Shown here in pieces: positions 1-10,050 of a stretch of DNA of 64,000 nt (position 1 is the first letter of the stretch; each line of letters opens with the position of its first letter). Origin of the DNA: Neoechinorhynchus agilis (taxonomy: Eukaryota > Animalia > Acanthocephala). The translations under genes were made by a program, and so were the position numbers. The stretch is taken from the NCBI GenBank assembly GCA_051530055.1, contig CM121341.1, positions 10,022,784 through 10,086,783 on the forward strand. Direction: 5' to 3'. A model generated the notes under the pieces. The model ran no database searches. It had not been told where the DNA came from and saw only the letters and a program-made list of their open reading frames with translations.

Positions 1-1040
1 TAAACAAAAGTTCATTTCGATAATATTTTAATTCTATTCAATTGTTCCTTCGAATGGATGTGTATTCTCAATGGCGATTTGTAACACATTCGAGTTTTAT
101 TATTGAAATCTTCATTGCGAATCTTCAAGGCCTCAACTCGAGTGTGTAACAATTCGCCATTGAGAATAATATTTTGAATGAGTAAACAAAATTATTCTCG
201 AAATAAGATTGTGGTGATCATAATTCGGGATATTTCAGTAAACAAATTTTATGATAAACAAAAGTTCATTTCGAGAATATTTTAGTTCTATTCAATTGTT
301 CCTTCGAATGGATGTGTATTCTCAATGGCGAATTGTAACACATTCGAGTTTTATTATTGAACTCTTCATTGCGAATCTTCAAGGCCTCAGCTCGAGTGTG
401 TAACAATTCACCATCGAGAATAATATTTTGAATGAGCAAACAAAATTATTCTCGAAATAAGATTGCGGTGATCATAATTCGGGATATTTCAGTAAACGAA
501 TTTTATGATAAACAAAAGTTCATTTCGAGAATATTTTAATTCTATTCAATTGTTCCTTCGAATGGATGTGTATTCTCAATGGCGATTTGTAACACATTCG
601 AGTTTTATTATTCAATTCTTCATTGCGGATTTTCAAGGCCTCAACTCGAGTTCGCAACAATTCGCCATTGAGAATAATATTTTGAATGAGTAAACAAAAT
701 TATTCTCGAAATAAGATTGTGGTGATCATAATTCGGGATATTTCAGTAAACAAATTTTATGATAAACACAAATTCATTTCGAGAATATTTTAATTCTATT
801 CAATTGTTCCTTCGAATGAATGTGTATTCTCAATGGCGAATTGTTACACTGCTCGAGTTTTATTATTGAAATCTTCATTGCGAATCTTCAATGCCTCAGC
901 TCGAGTGTGTAACAATTCGCCATTGAGAATAATATTTTGAATGAGTAAACAAAATTATTCTCGAAATAAGATTGTGGTGATCATAATTCTTGATATTTCA
1001 GTAAACAAATTTTATGATAAACACAAATTCATTTCGACAA
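1..1040. repeat. Tandem satellite, 254-bp monomer, ~4 copies (truncated by the window start; degenerate tail to ~1300); each monomer contains a ~30-bp-arm inverted repeat
   Basis: TAAACA(A/C)AA(G/A)TTCATTTCG recurs at 1, 255, 509, 763 and ~1018. Internal IR: CTCAATGGCGATTTGTAACACATTCGAGT ... ACTCGAGTGTGTAACAATTCGCCATTGAG. Confidence 0.95.
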
Positions 1041-1560
1041 TATTTTTAATGAGTCTAAAATATGAAATATTCCAGAAATTTATTTGTGGAGATCATAATG
1101 CCAGATATTTGAGTGGAATATTTATATCTTCTATTATGATCATCAAAAGTTCATTTCGAGAATATTTTGAACGAGTCCAAAAGCCTAAGATCAAAAATAT
1201 TTCCGAAATGAATTTGATGTGATTATAATGCCGGATATTTTCGGTAAACAAATTTTTGTCCAGGATTATGATAAAAAAGTTTATTTCGATAATATTTTGA
1301 ATATGTCAATTTTATGTTTTTTAGAACATTTTTTCCTCGGCCTATTTTCATTTTAAGCATACATCGGTTTGACTGTAGCCGAAAAAGTCAAAAACGCTGA
1401 ATCAATGGAACCGGTTTACCGGCAAACATTAAAGAGTTAATTTAAGGCTAACAGTAAAAGGAAATGGAATGAACCTAACTGGAAAACTAATTTTTTTAGA
1501 TGGAACTTTTTATTCTATGAACGTGATTGAAAAATCGCCAGCTTCATGTATGATTCAGAT

Positions 1561-1576: not shown

Positions 1577-1935
1577 TTTTATCTTGTTGTGTACCAACAG
1601 CTCTACTTGAATCGATTTTCTTTTATGATGCTACTGAATAAAAGTCTTAAATGCTCTTAGATCAAATCGAGATGTGAGGTAAGAAACATCGCATCGTTTC
1701 CTAAGAAACACTAACCTGTTGAATCCAAGCCGAATGTTGACAATCACTACGAATCCAAAATTTAGTTGATGTTTTCATACCGTTGATTATCACACTAGTT
1801 TAGGCATTAGTCGGTTGTTAGCGCATCTTCCCAAAGCCATTTAAGGATCTCTTCGATGTACAAAGACTAAAGTAATCCATATCCGAGAAGACTTTCCACT
1901 CTTCGAGTTTTTATTGTGAACACCACCAAGCCTAA

Positions 1936-4900
1936 ATGAACAACCAAAATTTTCCACCAGTAAATGGCAATATATCTCGTGCCACGAAACGGAAGCGGAT
2001 TAATCCATGGGGCCCAGAGACGTACACTGAGCTTATAACTGCAGCCATTGAAAGCAGCATGACCAAATGCTTAGTTCTTCAGGATATTTACAATTATATG
2101 TGTGCTCACAAGCGTTACTTTAATGAACGACGGGATGAACCGGCCGCCAAAGGGTGGCATAATCAAGTTCGGCACACACTATCGACGAGTAACAAATTTA
2201 CAAGGATTGCACCTCCCAGCCGAGGAATGTCATCGTTATGGAAAATAAACCCTTCTTACCAAGATCGCCGGTTTAAGAGAAGTAGACTTAATGTTGCGAC
2301 AATCACATCGGGCACAATGGATAACGCATATAGAATGCTACTTGGTGTCGCTCACAATCCAGTTGCGGCTCCAATTCAGAATTGGAATGGAATGCATCAA
2401 TTCCGAACAGAAAATTTATATTCGCCACAAGCCCTTGGGAACGCCGGCTCGGGGCTTAATGTAACCAGTTATCCCTTTACTCATTATATTCAAGGCGGTT
2501 TCAATCCGGAACAAATTCAGTTTGAGGATCAGAATCGGACTATAAGACAAAATATTGAGCAAAATGACCCGCGTCTCGAACACCCAGCGATTGCTGAATT
2601 TAGTGCAGTTGGTCAATATGGAAACCAATCGAACCGTTATCGCGGTGGCGAGCATAACGCTCAACCGGGAAATGCCATCGGTATAAATGCAAATCCGGCA
2701 CAGCAACAATCGACAAATGAAATTCCACAAACCCTTTGGAACGCCGGCTCGGGGTTTAATGTCACCAATTATCGCCTTAATCATTCTATTCAAGGCGGTT
2801 TCAATCCGGAACCAATTCAGTCTGAGGATGAGAATCGGACTATAAGACAAAATATTGAGCAAAATGGCCCGCGTCTCGAACTCCCAGCGATTGCTGAATT
2901 TAGTGCAGTTGGTCAATATGGAAACCAATCGAACCGTTATCGCGGTGGCGAGCATAACGCTCAACCGGGAAATGCCATCGGTATAAATGCATCTCCAGCA
3001 CAGCAACAATCGACAAATGAAAATCACAAACACTTACGAACGCCGGCTCGGGGTTTAATGTTATTAATTATCCCTTAATCTTTCTATTCAAGGCGGTTTT
3101 AATCCGGAACCAATTCAGTCTGAGGATCATAATCGGATTATAGACAAGATATTGAACAAAATGGCCCGCGGCTCGAACTCCGATCGCTGAATTTAGCGCT
3201 GTTGGTCAATATGGAAACCAATCGAACCGTTATCGCGGTGGCGAGCATAACGCTCAACCGGGAAATGCCATCGACATAAATGCATCTCCGGCACAGCAAC
3301 AATCGACAAATGAAAATCTACAAACGCTTACGAACGCCGGCTCGGGGTTTAATGTTACCAATTTTCCCCATAATCATTCTATTCAAGGCGGTTTTAATCC
3401 GGAACCAATTCAGTCTGAGGATCATAATCGGATTATAGGACAAGATATTGAACAAAATGGCACGCGGCTCGAACTCCCTCCGGTTGCTGAATTTAGCGGT
3501 TGGTGAATATGGAAACCAATCGAAGCGTTATCGCGGTGGGGAGCCCAACGCTCAACCGGGAAATGCCATCGACATAAATGCATCTCCGGCACAGCAACAA
3601 TCGACAAATGAAAATCTACAAACGCTTACGAACGCCAGCTCGGGGTTTAATGTTACCAATTGTCCCCATAATCATTCTATTCAAGGCGGTTTTAATCCGG
3701 AACCAATTCAGTCTGAGGATCATAATCGGATTATAGGACAAGATATTGAACAAAATGGCACGCGGCTCGAACTCCCTCCGGTTGCTGAATTTAGCGCAGT
3801 TGGTGAATATGGAAACCAATCGAAGCGTTATCGAGGTGGGGAGCCCAACGCTCAACCGGGAAATGCCATCGACATAAATGCATCTCCGGCACAGCAACAA
3901 TCGACAAATGAAAATCTACAAACGCTTACGAACGCCAGCTCGGGGTTTAATGTTACCCATTGTCCCCATAATCATTCTATTCAAGGCGGTTTTAATCCGG
4001 AACCAATTCAGTCTGAGGATCATAATCGGATTATAGGACAAGATATTGAACAAAATGGCACGCGGCTCGAACTCCCTCCGGTTGCTGAATTTAGCGCAGT
4101 TGGTGAATATGGAAACCAATCGAAGCGTTATCGAGGTGGGGAGCCCAACGCTCAACCGGAAATGCCATCGACATAAATGCATCTCCGGCACAGCAACAAT
4201 CGACAAATGAAAATCTACAAACGCTTACGAACGCCAGCTCGGGGTTTAATGTTACCCATTGTCCCCATAATCATTCTATTCAAGGCGGTTTTAATCCGGA
4301 ACCAATTCAGTCTGAGGATCATAATCGGATTATAGGACAAGATATTGAACAAAATGGCACGCGGCTCGAACTCCCTCCGGTTGCTGAATTTAGCGCAGTT
4401 GGTGAATATGGAAACCAATCGAACCGTTATCGCGGTGGGGAGCCCAACGCTCAACCGGGAAATGCCATCGACATAAATGCATCTCCGGCACAGCAACAAT
4501 CGACAAATGAAAATCTACAAACGCTTACGAACGCCAGCTCGGGGTTTAATGTTACCCATTGTCCCCATAATCATTCTATTCAAGGCGGTTTTAATCCGGA
4601 ACCAATTCAGTCTGAGGATCATAATCGGATTATAGGACAAGATATTGAACAAAATGGCACGCGGCTCGAAATCCCTCCGGTTGCTGAATTTAGCGCAGTT
4701 GGTGAATATGGAAACCAATCGAAGCGTTATCGAGGTGGGGAGCCCAACGCTCAACCGGGAAATGCCATCGACATAAATGCATCTCCGGCACAGCAACAAT
4801 CGACAAATGAAAATCTAAAAACGCTTACGAACGCCAGCTCGGGGTTTAATGTTACCCATTGTCCCCATAATCATTCTATTCAAGGCGGTTTTAATCCGGA

Positions 4901-7250
4901 ACCAATTCAGTCTGAGGATCATAATCGGATTATAGGACAAGATATTGAACAAAATGGCACGCGGCTCGAACTCCCTCCGGTTGCTGAATTTAGCGCAGTT
5001 GGTGAATATGGAAACCAATCGAAGCGTTATCGAGGTGGGGAGCCCAACGCTCAACCGGGAAATGCCATCGACATAAATGCATCTCCGGCACAGCAACAAT
5101 CGACAAATGAAAATCTAAAAACGCTTACGAACGCCAGCTCGGGGTTTAATGTTACCCATTGTCCCCATAATCATTCTATTCAAGGCGGTTTTAATCCGGA
5201 ACCAATTCAGTCTGAGGATCATAATCGGATTATAGGACAAGATATTGAACAAAATGGCACGCAGCTCGAACTCCCTCCGGTTGCTGAATTTAGCGCAGTT
5301 GGTGAATATGGAAACCAATCGAAGCGTTATCGAGGTGGGGAGCCCAACGCTCAACCGTCAAATGCCATCGACATAAATGCATCTCCGGCACAACAACAAT
5401 CGACAAATGAAAATCTACAAACGCTTACGAACGCCAGCTCGGGGTTTAATGTTACCAATTGTCCCCACAATCATTCTATTCAAGGCGGTTTTAATCCGGA
5501 ACCAATTCAGTCTGAGGATCATAATCGGATTATAGGACAAGATATTGAACAAAATGGCACGCGGCTCGAACTCCCTCCGGTTGCTGAATTTAGCGCAGTT
5601 GGTCAATATGCAAACCAATCGAACCGTTATCGCGGTGGCGAGCATAACGCTCAACCGGGAAATGCCATCGGTATAAATGCATCTCCGGCACAGCAACAAT
5701 CGACAAATGAAAATCCACAAACGCTTACGAACGCCAGCTCGGGGTTTAATGTTACCAATTTTCCCCATAATCATTCTATTCAAGGCGGTTTTAATCCGGA
5801 ACCAATTCAGTCTGAAGGTCGTAAGCGGATTATACGACAAAATATTGAGCAAAATGGCCCGCGTCTCGAAATGCCTGCGATTGCTGAATTTAGCGCAGGT
5901 GGTGAATATGGAAACCAATCGAAGCGTTATCGAGGTGGGGAGCCCAACGCTCAACCGGGAAATGCCATCGACATAAATGCATCTCCGGCACAGCAACAAT
6001 CGACAAATGAAAATCTACAAACGCTTGCAAACGCCGGCTCGGGGTTTAATGTTACCAATTTTCCCCATAATCATACTATTCAAGGCGGTTTTAATCCGGA
6101 ACCAATTCAGTCTGAGGATCATAATCGGATTATAGGACAAGATATTGAACAAAATGGCACGCGGCTCGAACTCCCTCCGGTTTCTGAATTTAGCGCAGTT
6201 GGTGAATATGGAAACCAATCGAAGCGTTATCGAGGTGGGGAGCCCAACGCTCAACCGGGAAATGCCATCGACATAAATGGATCTCCGACACAGCAACAAT
6301 CGAGAAATGAAATTCCACAGACCCTTTGGAACGCCGGCACGGGGTTTAATGTTACCAATTATCGCCTTTATCATTCTATTCAAGGCGGTTTTATTCCGGA
6401 ACCAATTCAGTCTAACTATCATAATCGGATTATAGGACAAAATATTGAACAAAATGGCACGCGGCTCGAATTCCCTGCGATTTCTGAATTTAGCGCAGTT
6501 GGTCAATATGCAAACCAATCGAACCGTTATCGCGGTGGCGAGCATAACGCTCAACCGGGAAATGCCATCGGTATAGATGCATCTCCGGCACAGCAACAAT
6601 CGACAAATGAAAATCCACAAACGCTTACGAACGCCAGCTCGGGGTTTAATGTTACCAATTTTCCCCATAATCATTCTATTCAAGGCGGTTTTAATCCGGA
6701 ACCAATTCAGTCTGAAGGTCGTAAGCGGATTATACGACAAAATATTGAGCAAAATGGCCCGCGTCTCGAAATGCCTGCGATTGCTGAATTTAGCGCAGGT
6801 GGTGAATATGGAAACCAATCGAAGCGTTATCGAGGTGGGGAGCCCAACGCTCAACCGGGAAATGCCATCGACATAATTGCATCTCCGACACAGCAACAAT
6901 CGACAAATGAAATTCAACAAACCCTTTGGAACGCCAGCTCGGGGTTTAATGTTACCCATTGTCCCCATAATCATTCTATTCAAGCCGGTTTTAATCCGGA
7001 ACCAATTAAGTCTGAGGATAAGAATCGGACTATAAGACAAAATATTGAGCAAAATGGCACGCGGCTCGAACTCCCTCCGGTTGCTGAATTTAGCGCAGTT
7101 GGTGAATATGGAAACCAATCGAACCGTTATCGCGGTGGCGAGCATAACGCTCAACCGGGAAATGCCATCGGTATAAATGCATCTCCAGCACAGCAACAAT
7201 CGACAAATGAAAACGTAGAGTTATACAACCTGGAACAATGCCAACGTTGA
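1936..7250 (+). CDS. FoxO-like forkhead transcription factor with ~16 tandem 100-aa repeats; apparent frameshifts at ~3025-3500 and ~4158
   Basis: N-terminal 'RKRINPWGPETYTELITAAIESS...LQDIYNYM...KGWHNQVRHTLS...F.R.......SLWKINP' fits a forkhead domain with the FoxO-type N(A/P)WG start and pre-helix-3 insertion. ORFs 1936-3078, 3448-4176 and the frame ending at 7250 all encode the same 100-aa repeat. Confidence 0.8.
2431..7215 (+). repeat. 300-bp coding tandem repeat, ~16 units
   Basis: The motif ACGCC(A/G)GCTCGGGGTTTAATGTTACC recurs every ~300 bp from ~2440 to ~6930; central units are near-identical. Confidence 0.97.
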
Positions 7251-8049: not shown

Positions 8050-10050
8050 CTCCATTATAACGCGCGATCACATTTGGATTCACTTCTTGGCGAAATGGTG
8101 CATTGTTGTTCAAAATGGTTAAGTATCGCGAAACTGGCATCAGTATCTCTCCTCAGAGCATATTTGTCTTCTTTTGTTCTCCTTTCCAAATTGTTTAGCC
8201 TACGTAGGATTTACTGCATTCAATGTAGGTAATTCTGTATACCACTGCGTTGCTTTCATGTTCCTCACGTTTCTTTACTATGGAGCTGAATGATTTGACT
8301 TTCTCGGTGTAGATACAACGCTCCATGTCTTTGGATGCAGCTCCTCTGATCAGGTTGTTAATTGTAGTAAATAACTCCTCGTCGACGAATGGTGAACCAT
8401 TGAAGGCTTTGTTTTGACTTCTAGCACAGTTTTCTTTGCATAGAAGGCTCTTTCAACTATATCTTCTTATCATGTAGATTGGATAGACCTTTTGTTTGAG
8501 CATGTCCCAAAGAAATTCAAGTTCCTCGCCGAGTCTTGGTTGTAGCAATAGTTATAGGCGCGATTAAATAGTGACTCTAATCTAGTTATTTTATATTTAA
8601 TTGGTGCCATTACAATGAATGAGGGCAATGTCAGCCGGTACACCAATCTTTGCATATACAGTGGTCTCAAACTCAGCTTATTTTAGCGTTATCGATACTT
8701 CCAAAAAAGAGATCACATTATGATTCTCCAAGTCGACGGTGGCTATTGGATGTTGTTGTGCTTGAAATTCAGCACGTGAGAAAACTTTTCCGTCTTTATG
8801 GACTTGTCTATTAAGATAAAAGTGTCATCAACGTATCTCTGCCAGAATTTCACACCCGGTAGGCTTGAAACATACTTAGCCTCCCAATCGCCAATGAACA
8901 ATTCGGCGAGAACTGGTTCAAGAGCACTCCCCATGGATAATCCATCTACTTAATCATAGCTCTTATCTTCGAAGTCGAAATTTCTTGCTCCTCGTGCACA
9001 TGTATAAGAGTTCCTTCCATTCAGATTCAGTCAAATTCCAGCCTTCTACATTGCGTTGAAGCATCGGAATCGCATGGCTGATCGCAGTCCAGTGGCACTT
9101 TTGTGAATAGCGACTTGGCCTCAGCAGAAATCATTCTATATTCTGCACATGCGTGCGCCTCCAATCTCCCTATGAACTCCACATCTGATAATACTGTGTG
9201 CTTACCCGGAGGCATTAAGTTTCTTAGCATGGTAGCCAATGCCCGAGTTGTTTTCGTATTATATGCAGAATGCGATGCAATAATTGGCCGAGCCTTTTCG
9301 CCAATAAATACATAATCGGTGCCAATCCATTGCTGGAAAGATGTTTCTGGTATATTTCAGGATCAATCCTTCCACGTTTCTTTAGTGAGAGTAGATATTG
9401 GTTGAACATAATTTCTCGTTTTGTAGTAGGGATAAAATTGCTACGTTTGCGTTCATAGTGAGTTAAGAAGATCCGATAAAGTCTTTAAAATAAAATTATG
9501 CCCCGTCGTATGCTTAGGTGTGCCCGGAAAATACATGAAGATTTGATTGCATTACGGAATCTTCTAGCACAGAACATTCGGTTAATACGTCGTATCCCTC
9601 GATTAGCGAGATCTATGATAGCGAAAAAACTCGGAGATTTGATCGATAAGGTTGACGGCGAATCCTTTTGATTGGTGCTAAAATGGATGCCCACTCCTTG
9701 ATTTCGCTTCAGCACTACGCTTATTCGTGGCTTGCTTAATCCTTGCGACATGCAAATGCGGTGTTGATTCGGACAGTCCAGTAACCAACGAACTCGATTA
9801 CCCGAAAAGCCAGGTAAGACTCTAATTCTAAGAGCTAACGGCATTCGATCTCTCCTCGAGACGGCTGGTTTAAGCAGAGATGACGGTAAAGGAAGAGAGG
9901 GCGTATCAACAGTTTCTTGGGAAAATGTCTCCTTGGGACTTTGCTAAGAGCAGCTTGTTCCTTGCAGTTTACGGAGTTGGTGAAATGGCGAAAAGGTGAG
10001 ATATACAAATGCCTCGATTTGTCACTGTATATTTTCAAAAGCTCTCGCCA
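8050..10050 (-). mobile_element. Decayed Penelope-like retroelement (RT + GIY-YIG endonuclease)
   Basis: Minus-strand fragments in the expected order: 'GLAPIMYLLAK', 'ISAEAKSLFTKVP', 'MGSALEPVLAELF...WQRYVDDTF', 'IKYKITRLESLFNRAYNYC', and at ~8190-8250 a GIY-YIG-like 'WIYRITYIECSKSYVG*T'. Many stops and frameshifts. Confidence 0.85.

Follow-up and report, generated by a model that had tools for sequence, protein, structure and literature searches.

What kind of gene is it in which a forkhead DNA-binding domain runs directly into a long tandem repeat, and does the repeat belong to the protein? The question is raised by a locus of the acanthocephalan Neoechinorhynchus agilis that lies in the 64-kb stretch of DNA analysed here (the window; G000:C1:10022784-10086783), part of an assembly of 46.2 Mb in 102 contigs (PMC12690905). 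GenBank models the gene as KAL7676083.1, 'hypothetical protein ACOME3_002339', of 1703 amino acids (aa). We consider it probable that the locus is a real, species-specific transcription-factor gene derived from FoxO, with a coding repeat tail of about 1,600 residues and a reading frame broken by errors. The annotation as a hypothetical protein existed already; what is chiefly added here is the family context of the gene.

The domain encoded at the start of the gene is a FoxO-class forkhead by sequence, fold, loop length and tree. The frame 1936-3078 matches PF00250 at aa 27-111 (E value 1.8e-17; 63.6 bits, with a cut-off of 27). Among solved structures the best matches are FoxO1 (75.4 bits), then FoxO4 and FoxO3 (down to 61 bits), while the best of the other classes are FoxN3 (46.6 bits), FoxK1 (42 bits) and FoxM1 (39.6 bits). 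The alignment with FoxO1 is free of gaps over aa 19-108, with 44% identity in the domain. An AlphaFold model, for which the input was an alignment with 43 relatives, has a predicted local distance difference test score (pLDDT) of 94-98 over aa 21-110 and the element order H1-S1-H2-H3-S2-S3 of a winged helix. When this forkhead model was used in a Foldseek search, the first 14 matches were all FoxO or DAF-16 domains, the best with template-modelling scores of 0.91-0.97 and root-mean-square deviations of 0.7-1.1 Å. In a database of 1.84 billion representatives the nearest proteins belong to nematodes, flatworms and a mite, and those with a name are called 'Forkhead box protein O'.

Loop and tree point the same way. 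In a profile alignment the H2-H3 loop of the window domain has the full FoxO length, and it is five residues shorter in the five ordinary Fox genes of N. agilis (L001-L005) used as the comparison in alignment and tree. A maximum-likelihood tree splits the FoxO-like set, the window domain included, from these five genes with a support of 99, and places the window gene on a long branch, grouped with three paralogues of 331-332 aa (support 86). The tree contained no outgroup from classes J, K, M, N and P, so that the evidence for the class lies chiefly in the score ranking and the loop; forkhead genes split by introns, which were read exon by exon with the exons unjoined, were left out of it. A first-pass annotation of the window had proposed a FoxO-type domain free of introns. 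Score ranking, fold, loop and tree all agree with the class, and the domain is indeed continuous, whereas the canonical FoxO of N. agilis is split by an intron after the residues GWK. Because the window gene has no intron where the canonical gene has one, its intronless state is probably due to retrocopying or intron loss.

The recognition helix of the window gene, WHNQVRHTLSTS, departs from the FoxO consensus, WKNSIRHNLSLH, by substitutions at five near-invariant positions. It keeps the consensus W, N, R, H, L and S, including the base-contacting N, R, H and S of N-x-x-R-H-x-x-S, and the winged-helix domain probably still recognises forkhead-type sites. In the open frames of the locus, searched with Pfam as separate pieces without reading through stops, PF00250 was the only match, and neither the FOXO KIX-binding module (PF16675) nor the FOXO-TAD (PF16676) was found; this is a weak criterion, both modules being missing in 32 of the 44 aligned proteins (the 43 nearest relatives and the window frame), many invertebrate FoxO among them, and the TAD being present in 12.

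The repeat follows without a break in frame. For Tandem Repeats Finder the array consists of 15.9 copies of 300 bp (2439-7213; 94% matches), and a split of our own gives 16 units starting from 2413, 13 of which are exactly 300 bp long. The sixteen 100-aa repeats announced by the first-pass annotation are therefore present, and they stand in the reading frame of the domain: the array begins inside the forkhead open frame and prolongs it. In this frame the consensus unit is free of stops, whereas the other forward frames contain 2 and 10 of them and the three reverse frames 1, 6 and 7. Altogether 1,427 in-frame codons are without a stop, and the GC content of the array at the three codon positions (GC1/GC2/GC3) is 0.585/0.436/0.353. 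We read the repeats as coding because they are in frame with the domain, have a period that is a multiple of 3, give stop-free codons with GC1 > GC2 > GC3 and are included in the GenBank model, and also because this genome has unbroken paralogues of the same design (2203 and 1488 aa) and two more array-bearing forkhead lineages.

The array has grown by unequal exchange and has a recently homogenised core (units 4-10). Units 1 and 2 are the most diverged, with 83-93% identity to the others. An internal duplication of 900 bp is indicated by the 99% identity between units 12 and 15.

The tail so encoded is rich in N, Q and G, as had been claimed (N 12.8%, Q 10.4%, G 10.2%, S 7.6%, P 7.6%), with 5.9% aromatic residues and a net charge of -4 per 100 residues. 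It is predicted, on weak evidence, to be disordered: residues 120-380 (2.2 units) have a pLDDT of 40-50 and no secondary structure in the AlphaFold model. The repeat peptide has no detectable relative in protein collections. The 380-aa frame, the 159-aa N-terminus and a 150-aa piece of repeat had no match in word-index searches of protein collections, and cluster look-ups yielded the GenBank model alone. A control showed that these collections contain this gene family only through GenBank annotation, so that blanks there say nothing on expression. The ESM Atlas gave no usable match, and neither the 300-bp DNA unit nor its peptide occurs elsewhere in the 46-Mb assembly. Pfam matches of repeat frames to NADHdh_A3 and DUF4302 did not exceed the threshold, no stretch passing by itself, and were rejected as noise summed over the repeats. 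The forkhead binding motifs TGTTTAC and TGTTTA do not occur in the array.

The frame itself is broken. The stop map gives open frames at 1936-3078, 3156-3503, 3439-4176 and 4107-7250, and six deletions account for the breaks: four in unit 3, after 3024, 3075, 3142 and 3177 (-1, -1, -1 and -4), one in unit 4, after 3498 (-2), and one in unit 6, after 4157 (-1). The broken units are 293, 298 and 299 bp long. Half of the deletions fall within a short run or repeat: one G is lost from GG, another from GGG, and one CTCC from CTCCCTCC. Restoring the 10 missing bases yields 1774 codons, which agrees with the protein of about 1,770 aa that had been expected if the frame were restored. The genome was put together with MaSuRCA as a hybrid assembly that combined Illumina and Nanopore R9.4 data of 50 worms in a pool; HiFi data were very scarce, and long reads served to close gaps. 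Our judgement, held with some confidence, is that the six deletions are consensus errors of this assembly and not real mutations, because a hybrid of pooled worms was assembled, because every event is a deletion, because all fall within 1.1 kb of the 5.3 kb, at or just inside the edge of the near-identical core, and because unit 3 carries four deletions yet only about six private substitutions, compared with about 0.05 indels per substitution in non-coding satellites of the genome.

Several observations weigh against a real gene with an erroneous sequence, and most of them favour real frameshifts instead. The six frame-breaking deletions stand against 79 substitutions in the array, a ratio like that of three non-coding N. 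agilis satellites taken together (4 indels to 78 substitutions, or about 0.05 per substitution), whereas three intact coding paralogue arrays have no frame-breaking indel in 218 substitutions. The other forkhead arrays were assembled without any frameshift, so clean assembly is possible, although the units of the intact arrays are more diverged and hence easier to assemble. Between units the ratio of nonsynonymous to synonymous polymorphism (pN/pS) is 0.85, with the three codon positions changed equally and no amino-acid constraint visible; it is, however, not much lower in the intact paralogue arrays (0.66-0.72) and is similar in wrong frames, and it fails to separate coding from non-coding sequence in these arrays. 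The low pLDDT of the repeat stems from an alignment without depth in that part, and the protein collections yield for this gene only the GenBank model, with no transcript or peptide support. If the frameshifts are real, the locus would be either a member of the FoxO-like family that is decaying as a pseudogene or a gene that ends at 3076-3078, with 380 aa made up of the forkhead and 2.2 units, in which case the remaining 4.2 kb of array would be an untranslated relic. Truncated family members do exist, such as a 179-aa copy in L050, and 380 aa is close to the 331-332 aa of the nearest paralogues. We nevertheless find this account rather unlikely. All breaks fall within 1.1 kb, and the unit that has four of them is in other respects not more diverged; units 4 and 6 each carry a deletion despite 99-100% identity to adjacent units; no break affects the forkhead part or the last 1047 codons; and near-identical repeats are liable to deletion errors under this assembly method.

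That the array might be a non-coding satellite abutting a short forkhead gene, its open frames a by-product of a stop-free unit, is suggested by reverse-strand open frames of up to 394 aa, by the same want of constraint between units and by the presence, beside a paralogue in this genome, of a 152-bp satellite derived from a coding repeat. It is very improbable: the array starts within the forkhead frame and carries it on, keeps an exact 300-bp period in 13 units, varies in GC by codon position as coding sequence does, is stop-free in the forkhead frame alone and has its unit nowhere else in the genome; moreover, the array period is a multiple of 3 in each of four independent forkhead lineages, and two of these arrays stand in frames of 1488-2203 aa without a break. 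There is still less to be said for the annotated model, in which three GT-AG introns (~137, 43 and 23 nt) are spliced to give the 1703-aa protein. KAL7676083.1 maps back with exactly those gaps (3060-3196, 3483-3525 and 4103-4125), GT...AG can be read at their ends, and an intron of 48 nt is present in the canonical FoxO. Each gap, however, sits on a deletion and removes sequence that is translated in other units; one is merely 23 nt long; past the third break the model contains 11 residues in a shifted frame; and gene predictors usually bridge frameshifts in just this pattern. The introns look like such devices and artificial, and we regard their splicing as scarcely credible. Hairpin introns of the non-GT-AG kind were ruled out as a source of the breaks, as the broken units are shorter than 300 bp and hold no insert to excise. 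We therefore favour a FoxO-derived gene whose tail would be coding throughout, and Table 1 lists its features.

Table 1. Features of the repeat-tailed forkhead gene, in window coordinates
Feature	Position	Strand	Evidence
In-frame TAA directly before the start ATG (ATG at 1936)	1933..1938	+	Read from sequence; annotated protein P0001 uses that ATG
FoxO-class forkhead (winged-helix) DNA-binding domain, aa 20-111, intronless	1993..2268	+	Pfam PF00250, sequence ranking, AlphaFold, Foldseek
Unique linker before the array, with the basic patch RRFKRSR (aa 111-117) at its start	2266..2412	+	Translation
Tandem array, 16 units x 300 bp (100 aa), in the forkhead frame	2413..7213	+	Tandem Repeats Finder, unit alignment
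Units 3-6, containing all six frame-breaking deletions	3011..4202	+	Unit split and alignment
Homogenised array core, units 4-10, 97-100% identical	3306..5402	+	Identity matrix
Unbroken 1047-codon frame: units 6-16, 11-residue unique end, TGA stop (7248-7250)	4107..7250	+	Stop map, translation
AATAAA, candidate polyadenylation signal, 57 nt past the stop codon	7307..7312	+	Motif scan

The motif scan found no AATAAA within the array, and the sole other copy, at 2244, lies in the coding part of the forkhead. Upstream of the gene a 254-bp x 4.1 tandem repeat (94-97% identical) occupies window 1-1046 and runs past the window start; kinship of the 300-bp unit with it was rejected, the two being unrelated on comparison. 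Downstream, at 8743-8934 on the reverse strand, a short open frame contains a YVDD-like reverse-transcriptase motif and is probably a decayed retroelement. Neither it nor the small open frames flanking the gene have a Pfam match.

How might such a protein be controlled? The pattern RxRxx[ST] has no match in the whole 1703-aa model, compared with 2-4 matches in named FoxO proteins (P0003, P0007, P0009 and P0012), and the consensus of relatives shows RxRxxTWP and RRRAxSMD. The forkhead domain is preceded by only about 20 residues, the long N-terminal arm of FoxO being absent, and there is therefore no room for the first Akt site. The RRFKRSR patch occupies the site of the FoxO RRRAxS Akt site and nuclear-localisation basic cluster, with a pLDDT of ~50 and with the serine motif missing; a second basic patch, KRKR, is located ahead of the domain. 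From the lack of these motifs, the usual nuclear-exclusion switch by Akt and 14-3-3 would be unable to govern the window protein. The first-pass annotation had seen this absence and suggested that the gene may be uncoupled from insulin/Akt control. The absence stands, but it is not particular to this gene, because most inspected N. agilis paralogues also lack RxRxx[ST], as do both exons seen of the canonical FoxO. Uncoupling from insulin signalling, if it has occurred, would concern the whole family and not the window gene alone, and the canonical copy may itself be without the classic Akt switch.

Nor is the architecture a one-off: the gene is a member of an extensive FoxO-like family, specific to the species, and tails of tandem repeats have arisen in this family several times. 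The 46-Mb genome has ~115 PF00250 profile matches, or about 75-80 loci once the halves of split domains are paired, and only five of the 30 best forkhead loci are ordinary Fox genes. At least 29 loci are FoxO-like and intronless, with 19 distinct sequences. All family members that were looked up are 'hypothetical protein' in GenBank. A canonical FoxO paralog, which the first-pass annotation had considered might exist elsewhere, is likely to be L057 on contig 3 (2804-3211 + 3215-4204; G000:C3, ~957.8-959.2 kb), whose domain, with the exons read separately and unjoined, resembles the FoxO consensus and has a GT-AG intron of ~48 nt after GWK. The second exons of several paralogues start at NSIRH or NAIRH, matching this split point. 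Forkhead clusters were observed at C1:2.7-2.9, 3.27-3.49 and 4.7-5.07 Mb, and most of their inspected members (e.g. L006-L030) are FoxO-like and intronless. A spacing of exactly 27,791 bp recurs in three pairs of forkhead matches at G000:C1:4.889-4.934 Mb, which points to a recent segmental duplication within the forkhead cluster. The papers on the N. agilis genome that were searched say nothing about forkhead genes, the genome paper's supplement likewise names no forkhead genes or locus tags, and literature searches found nothing on a FoxO expansion in acanthocephalans or rotifers.

Arrays of the same kind occur in other members of this family. L047 (G000:C1:4.73 Mb) has an unbroken frame of 2203 aa with 153 bp x 28.8 copies, and its copy L048, on the small contig C32, an unbroken frame of 1488 aa with 14.8 copies; KAL7667561.1 is a cluster-mate. 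Coding N/Q-rich arrays are also present in L053 (1101-2733; 150 bp x 11.0), L058 (2874-3715; 150 bp x 5.6) and L054 (3826-4804; 132 bp x 7.4). All four periods (300, 153, 150 and 132 bp) are multiples of 3. A relationship of the window repeat to the tails of other forkhead paralogues was rejected: the tails cannot be aligned with each other, and the arrays therefore arose independently. Duplicate or haplotype contigs are unequal in copy number (28.8 and 14.8 in one case, 11.0 and 5.6 in another). In the 150-bp lineage the chromosome copy and the small contig also differ in exon length (479 aa and 745 aa). Just downstream of the genes with the 153-bp repeat lies a non-coding 152-bp satellite (10 and 24 copies; L047 1-1521, L048 1-3693), which has indels of 1-2 nt that the coding arrays do not have.

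We propose a model where the product of the window gene is a nuclear forkhead regulator, carrying basic patches, that would bind forkhead-type sites free of Akt gating. Its tail of sixteen 100-aa units, rich in N, Q, G, P and S and mildly acidic, takes the place of the FoxO activation region and would most likely act as a multivalent low-complexity effector or activation region. The multiplied activation or condensate-forming domain suggested by the first-pass annotation is conjectural in the same way. Output would thus be delivered via a very long disordered tail, the length of which could be changed by unequal exchange. It is tempting to go further and to regard the gene as intact and expressed, the member with the longest unit in an Akt-free FoxO family with at least four independent repeat-tail lineages, where repeat number sets the strength or clustering of the factor; this fuller version we offer only tentatively.

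Few regulators of stress resistance, metabolism and lifespan have been studied as closely as the FoxO proteins. Most invertebrates have a single FoxO gene, a single-copy effector of insulin and stress signals. Here, a very reduced genome of 46 Mb retains dozens of FoxO-like copies, mostly without Akt motifs and several with huge, near-exact coding repeats. If this is true, the family would provide a natural experiment on what a FoxO DNA-binding domain does once it is uncoupled from insulin signalling, and on how the number of repeats in a disordered tail tunes a transcription factor. There is a practical side as well, as the family is annotated only as 'hypothetical protein' and the model of the window locus includes three artificial introns.

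Compared with the FoxO proteins of other animals (human FOXO1/3/4, DAF-16 and dFOXO), the window protein shares the fold, the loop length, the N-x-x-R-H-x-x-S contacts and a basic patch past the wing. It differs in having neither the N-terminal arm nor RxRxxS/T Akt sites, in the five substitutions of its recognition helix and in the ~1,600 residues of tandem repeat that replace the usual C-terminal half; from the canonical FoxO of its own genome it differs in lacking the intron after GWK. The closest forkhead domains, at 47% identity, are those of KAL7674289.1 and its relatives (L006, L008 and L019; 331-332 aa), which are likewise intronless with N/Q-rich tails, but these tails have no tandem repeats and no significant similarity to the 100-aa unit. 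L047 and L048 share the design: they are intronless, have no Akt motif and run from a FoxO-like domain at the extreme N-terminus into a long coding array rich in N and Q. Their domains, however, are just 37-38% identical to that of the window gene, their unit is 51 aa instead of 100 aa and cannot be aligned with it, their frames are unbroken, and they have an acidic, unique C-terminal region of ~430 aa that has no match in the window. Finally, the tail resembles the low-complexity, Q/N-rich and prion-like activation regions well known from transcription factors in its 33% of N, Q and G, its ~6% of aromatic residues, its net acidity and its predicted disorder. Unlike those regions, which are homopolymer runs or short degenerate motifs, it is composed of long, near-exact units of 100 aa.

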